Source: Ostrea edulis (Eukaryota). From it: 64,000 bases of DNA. The stretch is taken from the NCBI RefSeq assembly GCF_947568905.1, contig NC_079165.1, positions 77,004,001 to 77,068,000 on the forward strand, in the 5' to 3' direction. The notes under the pieces are model-generated. The model did no database searches and was not told the origin of the DNA. It saw only the letters and a list, made by a program, of their open reading frames with translations. Both the position numbers and the translations under genes were made by a program. This document shows, piece by piece, positions 57,201 to 63,008 of this stretch (positions within the stretch are counted from its first letter, which is position 1; every line of letters begins with the position of its first letter).

Positions 57201-57562
57201 ATATGTAATTTCTGAAACATTGGAAGAATTCGGCATTGAAAAATTCACAATATCCAAAAATTGTTGACAATTTTCCCCAAATCGATAGGGCATAAAGTAG
57301 CTTTTGAAATTAATATGAAAAACACTGGCAAATGCAAGTGGCATTAACAGCCCTATTCTTACAGCATGATTCCTGCCACGTTGTATGATAAGTTTGATGG
57401 GATAGTCCCCGAAGCACTCTATGGTGAAGTTTTCGCCAGTGTTAAGGACCACATCACCGGTGCTGGTATATATGGTGCTGTTTCCAAATTCTGTGTTGTT
57501 CTCTTTCGCCGGATAAATCTCCATGGTGGGCTTTGGGTTTGTGGATATTGTTCGTTTAAACT
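14621..57562 (-). CDS. VEGFR: VEGFR/PVR-like receptor tyrosine kinase (7 Ig domains, TM, split kinase), about 1357 aa without N-terminus
   Basis: 23 GT-AG exons with consistent phases, total 4073 nt: 57363-57562, 54296-54476, 53877-54164, 51519-51661, 43997-44189, 43097-43310, 38276-38415, 36592-36876, 36226-36412, 35637-35773, 34053-34248, 31066-31166, 27304-27446, 24426-24555, 21640-21744, 20979-21098, 20018-20301, 18047-18169, 17396-17466, 16770-16810, 16558-16657, 15976-16081, 14621-15205. Motifs seen: [41 protein letters not shown], kinase insert, [30 protein letters not shown]. Confidence 0.92.
15976..16081 (-). CDS. VEGFR: RTK kinase exon [22 protein letters not shown]...
   Basis: subdomain XI; AG/GT boundaries. 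Confidence 0.9.
16558..16657 (-). CDS. VEGFR: RTK kinase exon [13 protein letters not shown]...[11 protein letters not shown]
   Basis: subdomain X; AG/GT boundaries. Confidence 0.9.
16770..16810 (-). CDS. VEGFR: RTK kinase 41-nt exon [13 protein letters not shown]
   Basis: subdomain IX; tgtag acceptor, gtgagt donor. Confidence 0.9.
17097..17370. repeat. Degenerate 22-24-bp minisatellite next to the donor at 17395
   Basis: cattgtagatgaggtacacata units. Confidence 0.85.
17396..17466 (-). CDS. VEGFR: RTK kinase exon [24 protein letters not shown]
   Basis: subdomain VIII; AG/GT boundaries. Confidence 0.92.
18047..18169 (-). CDS. VEGFR: RTK catalytic exon [10 protein letters not shown]...DFGLAKDLY
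   Basis: 123-nt exon with HRD and DFG. Confidence 0.95.
18376..19318. repeat. AT-rich ~58-bp tandem repeat interrupted by a MITE
   Basis: tatatatttaattataattattataaggggaattatcttgatatttactta units on both sides of 18585-19214. Confidence 0.8.
18585..19214. mobile_element. Tc1/mariner-type MITE, 630 bp
   Basis: Imperfect TIR cagtcaactctcga / tcgagagttacctg, TA flanks. Confidence 0.78.
20018..20301 (-). CDS. VEGFR: RTK hinge plus kinase-insert exon
   Basis: [15 protein letters not shown]...[15 protein letters not shown]; ORF 20009-20332. Confidence 0.93.
20979..21098 (-). CDS. VEGFR: RTK alphaC exon [40 protein letters not shown]
   Basis: AG/GT boundaries, phase 1-1. Confidence 0.93.
21077..21260. 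repeat. 45-bp tandem repeat x4 spanning the RTK acceptor at 21098/21099
   Basis: catctgatctctgtcggtacagtctgtaacaaaattctaaacata; extra dispersed copy near 21389-21420. Confidence 0.93.
21640..21744 (-). CDS. VEGFR: RTK glycine-loop exon LGQGAFGRV...VAVKMVK
   Basis: GxGxxG and VAVK lysine. Confidence 0.94.
22188..22720 (+). mobile_element. TA-type MITE with right terminus tandemly amplified (~70 bp x6)
   Basis: Starts ta-cagttaaacacgctta; units end catgttttactgta-like. Confidence 0.65.
23269..24167 (-). mobile_element. Same MITE family, inverted, both termini tandemly amplified (~44 bp x9 and ~45 bp x9)
   Basis: ta-cagtaaaaca...agtgaa array faces a ttcactgtaactgtgttttactg-ta array; core matches the reverse complement of ~22214-22262. 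Confidence 0.72.
24426..24555 (-). CDS. VEGFR: RTK juxtamembrane exon ...[23 protein letters not shown]
   Basis: class III/V RTK YDxKWEFP motif. Confidence 0.92.
25479..26052. mobile_element. Tc1/mariner-type MITE, 574 bp
   Basis: TIR cagtcaaacctgttttaagaggccac / gtggccgctaagacaagtttgacag, TA flanks. Confidence 0.8.
26231..26760. repeat. 105-bp tandem repeat x5
   Basis: catacatgttcaacaagtcacc... near-identical copies differing in A-run length. Confidence 0.95.
27304..27446 (-). CDS. VEGFR: RTK transmembrane exon ([26 protein letters not shown])
   Basis: hydrophobic run followed by a basic stop-transfer; AG/GT boundaries. Confidence 0.9.
27870..31078. repeat. 19-bp minisatellite actgagtgtgttcactgat, about 168 copies, running out of the RTK Ig7b donor
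   Basis: Direct inspection; period 19. Confidence 0.97.
31066..31166 (-). CDS. VEGFR: Ig7 second half [23 protein letters not shown]
   Basis: I-set GxYxCxxxNxxG motif; phases match neighbours. Confidence 0.88.
31222..31522. mobile_element. Short TIR element at TTAA with an internal tRNA-like (A/B box) segment
   Basis: Degenerate TIR ggtggctcgctacac / gtagtgagctacg; minus strand 31363-31413 tagctcagtggtaag...gagttcaaa. Confidence 0.45.
31747..33923 (-). mobile_element. TTAA-flanked (Kolobok-like) non-autonomous element with THAP remnant and a nested insertion
   Basis: ttaa|aggaca...tgtcct|ttaa termini; minus 33650-33440 reads MFCAMLGC...[15 protein letters not shown]...RDP with a stop. Confidence 0.65.
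32354..33030 (+). mobile_element. Helentron/HINE-like non-autonomous element carrying ~4 satellite-like (~160 bp, Cg170-like) monomers
   Basis: aaacaagatgtgtttgtgaaac start, internal tandem caaggtca...gaaaggtcttgtcacaaggaata units, terminal hairpin gcccccgatcttcgatcttgggggc plus A-run. Family assignment is from memory of oyster repeats. Confidence 0.7.
34053..34248 (-). CDS. VEGFR: Ig7 first half ...[18 protein letters not shown]
   Basis: I-set CxAxGxPxPxIxWxKDG. Confidence 0.9.
35637..35773 (-). CDS. VEGFR: Ig6 second half [18 protein letters not shown]
   Basis: DxGxYxC motif. Confidence 0.88.
35777..36030 (+). mobile_element. Truncated copy of the same Helentron-like/Cg170-like family
   Basis: aaacaaaatgtgtttgtgaaac start and caaggtca units similar to 32354-33030. 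Confidence 0.6.
36075..36136. repeat. (GA)n microsatellite
   Basis: Direct inspection. Confidence 0.95.
36226..36412 (-). CDS. VEGFR: Ig6 first half [13 protein letters not shown]
   Basis: ORF 36222-36527, bounded by AG/GT. Confidence 0.85.
36592..36876 (-). CDS. VEGFR: Ig5 exon PPEVTLK...WLWQPC...AENSKG
   Basis: ORF 36524-36886; VEGFR D5-like PP and WxWQxC motifs. Confidence 0.85.
37790..38022 (+). mobile_element. Helentron-like 3' fragment
   Basis: gtgaaaaatatcaaagc...aaagttat monomer, gacaaacagacggaca, tgccccc...ggacataaaaa end. Confidence 0.5.
38276..38415 (-). CDS. VEGFR: Ig4 second half [20 protein letters not shown]
   Basis: AG/GT boundaries; phases 2-1 fit neighbours. Confidence 0.8.
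39403..41735. repeat. 57/59-bp minisatellite, about 40 copies, with a 289-bp higher-order period
   Basis: Unit ttacaggatcatacaatatgttgactgtattataggacaatataacatctgatcgta; ORF-track repeats recur every 289 bp. Confidence 0.96.
43097..43310 (-). CDS. VEGFR: Ig4 first half [20 protein letters not shown]
   Basis: ORF 43030-43281; AxPxPxVxW motif. Confidence 0.87.
43316..43903 (+). mobile_element. Helentron/HINE-like non-autonomous element (second family)
   Basis: aaacaagaggtccatgggccacatcactcacctgag start; gaaaagctcacttgagccttcggcacaggtgagctaaaaa hairpin end; related pieces at ~51775-51810 and ~52330-52660. Confidence 0.65.
43997..44189 (-). CDS. VEGFR: Ig3 second half [20 protein letters not shown]
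   Basis: DxGxYxC motif; AG/GT boundaries. Confidence 0.87.
45977..46086. repeat. 25-bp tandem repeat x4
   Basis: agtagaagatactcatcacatgatg. Confidence 0.9.
47520..47989. mobile_element. PIF/Harbinger-like MITE, 470 bp
   Basis: About 33-bp TIR ggccaattcaacttaatt..tagattatcatcc with 2 mismatches; flanks caa/taa. Confidence 0.72.
48945..49401 (+). pseudogene. Truncated gag-like ORF1 of the DIRS/Ngaro element
   Basis: ...[26 protein letters not shown] resembles the KLADxxxxGWxxVxEYxxDxLA motif of invertebrate YR-element ORF1. Confidence 0.65.
50363..50774 (+). pseudogene. Deleted tyrosine recombinase: N-terminal SAM-like core-binding part fused to the C-terminal HGRWKS...Y part
   Basis: [16 protein letters not shown]...LPA....VAAFL...YSIKWYH (ORF 50363-50725), then [16 protein letters not shown] in another frame (ORF 50550-50774). 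Confidence 0.78.
51519..51661 (-). CDS. VEGFR: Ig3 first half [12 protein letters not shown]...MEWSY
   Basis: ORF 51474-51698; GE..L.C...W motif. Confidence 0.87.
52030..52236. mobile_element. 207-bp MITE
   Basis: TIR ctgtaaatgtattaaatttggc / gccaaatataatacgtttacag, TA flanks. Confidence 0.78.
53425..53870. repeat. G/T-rich ~50-bp degenerate tandem repeat abutting the Ig2 donor
   Basis: ttctgatttgttctggggatgtt-G-run-gtattg-T-run units. Confidence 0.85.
53877..54164 (-). CDS. VEGFR: Ig2 exon [14 protein letters not shown]...YDPKTGF...FQCEA
   Basis: VEGFR/PDGFR D2 signature IPCxxxDP and YDPxxGF. Confidence 0.92.
54296..54476 (-). CDS. VEGFR: Ig1 second half YTGEYFCQY...YIYVR
   Basis: TGxYxC and YIYV motifs. 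Confidence 0.88.
54656..55823 (+). mobile_element. hAT-like non-autonomous element with transposase remnant
   Basis: Perfect 15-bp TIR catacatgccaactt; flanking tcatca duplication; 55320-55460 reads with frameshifts KALFANFIA...PFLVA / GLCKPMYTD / SKIA / CSRT, like hAT N-terminal regions. Confidence 0.7.
57363..57562 (-). CDS. VEGFR: Ig1 first half [19 protein letters not shown]
   Basis: ORF 57093-57599; tttgacag acceptor, gtaaga donor; starts in phase 1. Confidence 0.83.
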
Positions 57563-57564
57563 CT

Positions 57565-57716
57565 GTCAAATATAAATCAGTCAATATGAAATATGTCAAA
57601 TATAAATCAGTTAATATAAATTATGTCAAATACAAATCAGTCAATCAATATAAAATATGTCACTCAAATATAAATCAGTCAATATAAAATAAGTCAAATA
57701 AAAATCAGTCAATATT
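57565..57716. repeat. About 30-bp tandem repeat x5 abutting the Ig1a acceptor
   Basis: gtcaaatataaatcagtcaatatgaaatat units. Confidence 0.8.
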
Positions 57717-62772: not shown

Positions 62773-62897
62773 TGCAATACACAGATATATGATATGCCAC
62801 AAAATAAATGAACAGATATACCAGATACGAAAAATCACACTAGCTTCAGACTGCTGAACCACACTGGATTCGGACAGGTGTAAATGTATTGACTCAC

Positions 62898-63008
62898 CTG
62901 AGCAATTCTTCCCGACCCAGATGGGGCTACAGGTACAATGGTAATCCCCATGAGTGTTCGTACAGGTCCCATCATGTACACATGGAGACTTCAGGCACTC
63001 ATTTGTGT
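62898..63008 (-). CDS. Calcium-binding EGF-like domain exon DTNECLKSPCVHDGTCTNTHGDYHCTCSPIWVGKNCS (gene assignment uncertain)
   Basis: Six Cys in EGF spacing, DxNEC calcium motif, phase 1-1, tttttttatag acceptor, gtgagt donor. Confidence 0.88.

Follow-up and report, generated by a model that had tools for sequence, protein, structure and literature searches.

Receptor tyrosine kinase (RTK) families are defined by the architecture of their ectodomains, and the VEGFR/PDGFR/Pvr family is treated as carrying immunoglobulin (Ig) domains only. To our knowledge, the described members of this family do have Ig-only ectodomains. Ig and EGF modules are mixed in Tie1 and Tie2, which follow the layout Ig-Ig-EGFx3-Ig-FN3x3-kinase. 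In oysters, VEGF-VEGFR signaling has been tied to hemocyte production and migration, and the paper describing the Pacific oyster VEGFR (CgVEGFR) makes no mention of EGF (PMC12468279). The oyster kinome paper reports single VEGFR and PDGFR members and does not list their architecture, and our literature search found no description of an EGF-bearing VEGFR or Pvr. Here, we analyze a 64,000-nt stretch of Ostrea edulis DNA (NC_079165.1, positions 77,004,001 to 77,068,000; hereafter the window, free of N runs, in whose own numbering all coordinates are given). Its minus strand carries most of a predicted RTK gene of the VEGFR/PDGFR (Pvr-like) class, with seven Ig domains, one transmembrane (TM) segment, and an insert-split kinase, and the first Ig exon of this gene is spliced to an exon that encodes a calcium-binding EGF (cbEGF) module.

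A cbEGF exon spliced to the first Ig exon

The first-pass annotation of the window proposed an EGF-Ig7-kinase receptor, on the grounds that an intact cbEGF exon in phase 1-1 lies 5.3 kb upstream, on the same strand, of the phase-1 exon encoding the first half of Ig domain 1 (Ig1a). The sequence bears out this arrangement, and the distance is 5,335 nt. The cbEGF exon is preceded by a pyrimidine tract and AG and followed by GTGAGT; its first two bases finish a codon and its last base begins another, which makes it symmetric in phase (1-1). Its peptide, (D)TNEC...C-x-N-x4-Y-x-C...KNCS, contains six cysteines and begins with D-x-N-E-C. Pfam assigns it to EGF_CA with 27.0 bits, equal to the cut-off of 27, and to EGF with 24.5 bits (cut-off, 21.5). 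Ig1a has the acceptor ...gacAG, also in phase 1, and the donor GCT/GTAAGA. Joined directly, the two exons read in frame as ...KNCS-E-FKRTIS..., in agreement with the proposed splice.

Transcript evidence was obtained from sequencing run X1. No run recorded as RNA covers the stretch; X1 matched 6% of the sampled words, close to the fraction of the queried stretch that is exonic. Between 57250 and 63150, X1 covers exons and high-copy repeats only, with a depth of 0 in the bins of unique intron sequence, and it was taken as RNA-like because its coverage is confined in this way. In the DNA runs X2 and X5, almost every bin of the same region is covered at about 5x. An X1 contig of 1,549 nt (depth, 37.6) matches 62898-63011 without mismatches (114/114) and passes from 62898 straight to 57562-57362. 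The 5,335 nt that it skips are bounded by CT..AC on the plus strand, that is, by GT..AG on the strand of the gene. This is the RNA junction, exact in its coordinates, by which the first-pass annotation had proposed that its model be checked. The joint is absent from the DNA runs X2 and X5.

Beyond Ig1a, the contig carries 513 nt that fall outside the queried stretch and then maps to 59889-59983 with 11 mismatches. The mismatched piece corresponds to position 51617, 44 nt into the exon with its start at 51661; these 44 nt, together with Ig1b (181 nt) and Ig2 (288 nt), account for the 513 nt exactly. Because this sum is exact, the contig reads as correctly spliced receptor mRNA: it is a five-exon piece with the EGF exon just before Ig1a. 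The EGF module is thus a genuine coding part of the receptor and lies directly N-terminal of Ig1.

The mismatched match reflects a feature of the intron between the EGF and Ig1a exons. Positions 59874..60044 on the minus strand hold a decayed partial copy of the first-half exon of Ig3 (51661-51519), which lies outside the mRNA. Local alignment showed deletions of 3 nt and 1 nt and about 12% mismatches, with the 5' part and the donor missing. The sole X1 signal at this copy, at 59889-59983, is the mismatched mapping of the transcript of the true exon. Very high-copy repeats occupy 57841-58431, 60599-61189, and 63034-63124, in and just upstream of the intron. Summed over contigs, their depth is as high as about 3e5 in the DNA runs, against about 1.8e4 in X1, and hundreds of loose ends occur at 58283 and 58352. 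These repeats probably represent fragments of transposons or satellites and are also transcribed from some location.

The Ig1a part of the contig differs from the window at 8 of 201 nt. Seven of these differences are listed, within 80 nt (57435-57514, minus strand); two are silent and five change residues (Y16F, A18V, N21S, F25S, and S28G in exon numbering). The N-terminal loop of Ig1, which is N-glycosylated, contains all five replacements, while the adjoining EGF exon is identical, and given this clustering, the tip of Ig1 looks fast evolving or highly polymorphic. At the variant positions, X2 and X5 show only the letters of the window, at single-copy depth. Since these runs show no second copy, a paralogue in this genome is rejected as the source of the X1 contig, which comes from an allele or from the orthologue of a close relative. 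Polymorphism in this region is high, as three DNA contigs from the same species as the window show about 1.3% difference from it.

Conservation of the exon and the start of the receptor

Orthologous fragments of the Ig1a open reading frame (ORF) are 63 to 83% identical in other species. Three comparison contigs from a related species (L005 to L007; 2.7 to 2.8 kb) carry one of them, P0003, which is 65% identical to Ig1a. The EGF peptide matches positions 232-339 of L005 (E value, 3e-14); these lie 1.87 kb upstream of the Ig1a exon of L005, in the same orientation. The EGF exon of L005 (230-340) again measures 111 nt and is again in phase 1-1; it is flanked by ...tatAG on the 5' side and GTGAGT on the 3' side. 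It shares 24 of 36 residues with that of the window and retains all six cysteines together with the DxNEC and calcium-binding motifs. Ig1a of L005 likewise begins in phase 1; spliced together, the two exons would read ...KNCE-E-FKRV....

The synonymous divergence (dS) between the two EGF exons is about 1.36 and the nonsynonymous divergence (dN) about 0.23, giving a dN/dS of about 0.17. Nothing in the intron between the two exons could be aligned between the window and L005 with blastn (word size, 7) or tblastx. The low dN/dS beside an unalignable intron argues for purifying selection on the EGF exon, and selection has thus preserved the exon, its phases, and its place before Ig1 over a deep divergence. 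The defining features of a calcium-binding EGF module, namely six cysteines, the N-terminal D/N-x-D/N-E/Q-C, and the aromatic residue in C-x-D/N-x4-F/Y-x-C, are present in both species; calcium binding by the module is predicted from this motif.

A receptor that starts at its Ig domains would have a first coding exon between the EGF exon and Ig1a. The intron was scanned in both the window and L005 for an ATG followed by a hydrophobic start and a phase-1 donor. No candidate was found in the intron of L005. The sole candidate in the window, at 58985..59102 on the minus strand, opens with an ATG and a hydrophobic segment, ends at a weak donor in phase 1, and could in principle join Ig1a in frame. 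It was rejected, as X1 has a depth of 0 over 58432-59810 and L005 has no counterpart. By X1 depth and the comparison with L005, the intron thus holds no transcribed or conserved first exon, in keeping with the earlier remark that neither a signal-peptide exon nor a convincing promoter was found between the two exons. Ig1a begins in phase 1 and therefore cannot be the first coding exon. With no internal first exon available, the signal peptide would have to be encoded upstream of the EGF exon. An Ig-only ectodomain with a signal peptide directly before Ig1 is not what was found: the transcript contig joins Ig1a to the cbEGF exon.

The contig continues for 590 nt 5' of the EGF exon with sequence that does not fit 63012-63150. 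Its alignment ends within 3 nt of the acceptor of the EGF exon, as expected at a further splice junction. The first Asp of the D-x-N-E-C motif requires a G from an exon further upstream, and the next three bases of the contig match TAG, consistent with this. Between 63009 and 64000, there is neither a ...TAG/GT donor with an open frame nor an EGF-like frame. As no suitable donor is found there, the next upstream exon most likely lies outside the window. There is room in the 590 nt for a 5' untranslated region, the signal peptide, and perhaps a few modules at most; extra coding sequence outside the window would fit the earlier suggestion of further EGF modules there. L005 stops 229 nt upstream of its EGF exon, with no ORF called in that segment, and the Logan contigs that bear the Ig1a or EGF ORFs measure 1 to 2.9 kb.

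Receptor class and gene layout

Below Ig1a, the stop-free stretches of the minus strand, read directly, hold paired Ig half-domain exons, the TM and juxtamembrane segments, and the full set of tyrosine-kinase motifs (Table 1). Ig-family Pfam matches fall on the paired exons from 57562 down to about 30989; the count of seven Ig domains comes from reading the exon pairs. The Ig2 exon matches PF21339 (VEGFR-1-like_Ig-like) with 41.1 bits against a cut-off of 27 (E value, 1.5e-10). In the ESM Atlas, it matches generic Ig clusters only, with a FLT3 fragment at the top. Binding of VEGF/PVF-family ligands by the receptor is suggested by a single feature, the likeness of Ig2 to the ligand-binding domain of VEGFR-1.

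PK_Tyr_Ser-Thr matches were obtained on at least five exons. In the exon at 20012-20335, residues 11 to 107 cover only positions 73 to 123 of this profile, which reveals a kinase insert. The PDB structures nearest to this exon are VEGFR2 and VEGFR1, followed by PDGFRA, FLT3, and FGFRs. The Tie kinase is absent from the best 60 PDB matches of the exon, and FN3 gave no Pfam family match in any ectodomain exon. Ab initio splice threading of the whole gene was unreliable, since known exon borders were misplaced, and the downstream borders are therefore approximate.

Table 1. Exons and intron of the receptor gene in the window
Feature	Position	Strand	Length and phase	Basis and remarks
cbEGF coding exon	62898..63008	-	111 nt, phase 1-1	AG/GT sites, Pfam, X1 contig, L005 orthologue
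EGF-to-Ig1a intron	57563..62897	-	5,335 nt	Removed in the X1 joint; with high-copy repeats and decayed exon copy
Ig1a exon, first half of Ig domain 1	57363..57562	-	200 nt, phase 1 to 0	Sequence, X1 contig piece 57362-57562, orthologous ORF fragments
Ig1b exon, second half of Ig domain 1	54296..54476	-	181 nt	Splice sites read; length fits X1 contig
Ig2 exon, VEGFR-1-like ligand-binding-type Ig domain	53877..54164	-	288 nt	Pfam, splice sites; length fits X1 contig
Ig3 exon, first half	51519..51661	-		Sequence; 3' end of X1 contig falls here
Remainder of receptor gene (Ig3b-Ig7 half-domain exons, TM, juxtamembrane, kinase, tail)	14621..51518	-		Stop-free stretches, Pfam, PDB; borders approximate
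TM exon	about 27262-27471	-		Hydrophobic stretch then basic residues, read in frame
Juxtamembrane exon	about 24409-24576	-		Stop-free stretch
Split tyrosine-kinase exons	about 15952-21817	-		PK_Tyr_Ser-Thr matches; kinase insert within 20012-20335
C-terminal tail exon	ends at stop codon 14623-14621	-	218 residues	Stop-free stretch

The receptor resembles the VEGFR/PDGFR class, as exemplified by Drosophila Pvr and oyster CgVEGFR, in its seven Ig domains encoded as half-domain exons, its single TM segment, and its insert-split kinase nearest to VEGFR2 and VEGFR1. It differs from that class in having at least one cbEGF module before Ig1, with further transcript sequence upstream of it. All of the class features tested were found except the Ig-only ectodomain, and the receptor is a variant of the VEGFR/PDGFR/Pvr class. 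With the Tie receptors, it shares the mixing of Ig and EGF modules in an RTK ectodomain and a split kinase. However, EGF stands N-terminal to Ig1 here and between Ig2 and Ig3 in Tie, no FN3 match was obtained, and the kinase is nearer to VEGFR; judged by these features, this is not a Tie receptor. The EGF module itself is similar to those of fibrillin, Notch, and other proteins of the matrix or cell surface, with six cysteines, the D-x-N-E-C start, a hydroxylation-type C-x-N-x4-Y-x-C motif, and a phase 1-1 exon. Unlike them, it is attached to the ectodomain of a receptor tyrosine kinase.

Two other features of the window were observed. At the end of the window away from the EGF exon, the plus strand carries exons of a myotubularin-type phosphatase (about 3838-6500), with the active-site motif in a stop-free stretch. 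Long minisatellite or tandem-repeat arrays at 2-1877, 4138-5737, 23719-24228, 39406-41777, and 63400-63660 give rise to very long, spurious frames of repetitive peptide, and several of the arrays sit in introns of the receptor gene.

Interpretation and significance

The observations are best explained by a VEGFR-class receptor whose mRNA does not start at Ig1: at least one cbEGF exon is spliced in frame onto Ig1a, and about 590 nt more lie 5' of it, outside the window. We hold this explanation with good, although not full, confidence. The splice junction and the in-frame reading are shown, as is the fact that a second species conserves the exon together with its phases and position; the architecture is the EGF-Ig7-kinase one put forward in the first-pass annotation.

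Several points weigh against this explanation. The joint is known from one contig of one run, the RNA status of X1 is a guess, and the organism label of X1 differs from that of the DNA runs, beside the 8 mismatches in 201 nt of Ig1a. The signal peptide and the start codon are not among the letters read, nor are the 590 nt upstream. Contigs drop rare variants, and a phase-symmetric exon can be skipped in frame, such that EGF-less isoforms are possible. Searches for a full-length annotated orthologue found none, and public models built from RNA-seq may well already contain the exon. The matches of a phmmer search with the Ig1a exon against 50% representatives were either ORF fragments from genomic DNA (P0001-P0005) or spurious proteins made of repeats (P0006-P0009), under a length filter that hides proteins of ~1,400 amino acids. 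Word searches with the Ig1a ORF and the EGF-exon ORF gave nothing further, and metagenome scans for the EGF exon gave 0 matches. Finally, the functional role of the EGF part is a matter of inference.

The alternative that survives best is that the EGF exon is an optional cassette, in which case an upstream exon may splice straight to Ig1a and the main isoform might lack EGF. The symmetric phase of the exon would permit this, and a single contig, of a kind that loses minor forms, would not reveal it. Nevertheless, the sole X1 contig that contains Ig1a passes unbranched through the EGF joint, and the exon has been retained at low dN/dS over a divergence at which dS is saturated. A cassette would be compatible with the receptor architecture proposed here, and we regard it as a rather improbable refinement of it.

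Considerably less probable is a read-through, or conjoined, transcript, in which an upstream gene for EGF repeats is now and then spliced onto the receptor gene, the normal start of the receptor lying elsewhere. What leaves room for such a transcript is that the mRNA was read from the EGF exon onward, short of the 590 nt on its 5' side and of any signal peptide. Yet neither species has a transcribed, conserved, or convincing first exon between EGF and Ig1a, the phase-1 start of Ig1a needs an upstream coding exon, and the adjacency of the two exons and their phase are kept in a second species despite a much shorter intron. We dismiss as next to impossible that no real exon is involved and that the EGF-like ORF arose by chance or the contig by chimeric assembly, for although Logan contigs can be chimeric at repeats and the EGF_CA score lies exactly at the Pfam cut-off, the joint falls exactly on a canonical GT..AG with the frame kept, four consecutive joints fit to the base, and an exon of equal length and phases exists in another species.

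If the EGF module is part of the receptor as proposed, a signal peptide would be followed by probably at least one further extracellular module before the EGF exon, because the calcium site of a cbEGF module, at its N-terminal edge, normally packs against the preceding domain. Given the VEGFR-1-like Ig2, VEGF/PVF-like ligands would still bind Ig2-3 as in VEGFRs. The EGF part would form a stiff, calcium-stabilized N-terminal extension, and this extension may offer an extra binding surface for matrix, for a co-receptor, or for self-association. A bolder proposal, to which we give little credence for now, is that oysters, and perhaps lophotrochozoans more widely, possess a conserved and undescribed class of VEGFR/PVR with a multi-module EGF arm before the seven Ig domains. 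In such a class, a VEGFR scaffold would have acquired a Tie-like mix of EGF and Ig independently of Tie, and besides binding VEGF/PVF the receptor would have a second binding function, dependent on calcium.

Were a VEGFR-type receptor of an oyster to bear an EGF extension that is both conserved and transcribed, it would offer a clear-cut example from nature of exon shuffling reshaping a growth-factor receptor. The phase-symmetric EGF exon also raises the question of isoforms with and without the module. Moreover, the finding bears on how oyster VEGF-VEGFR signaling is modeled and assayed, since recombinant ectodomains that lack the N-terminal part may miss an interaction surface.

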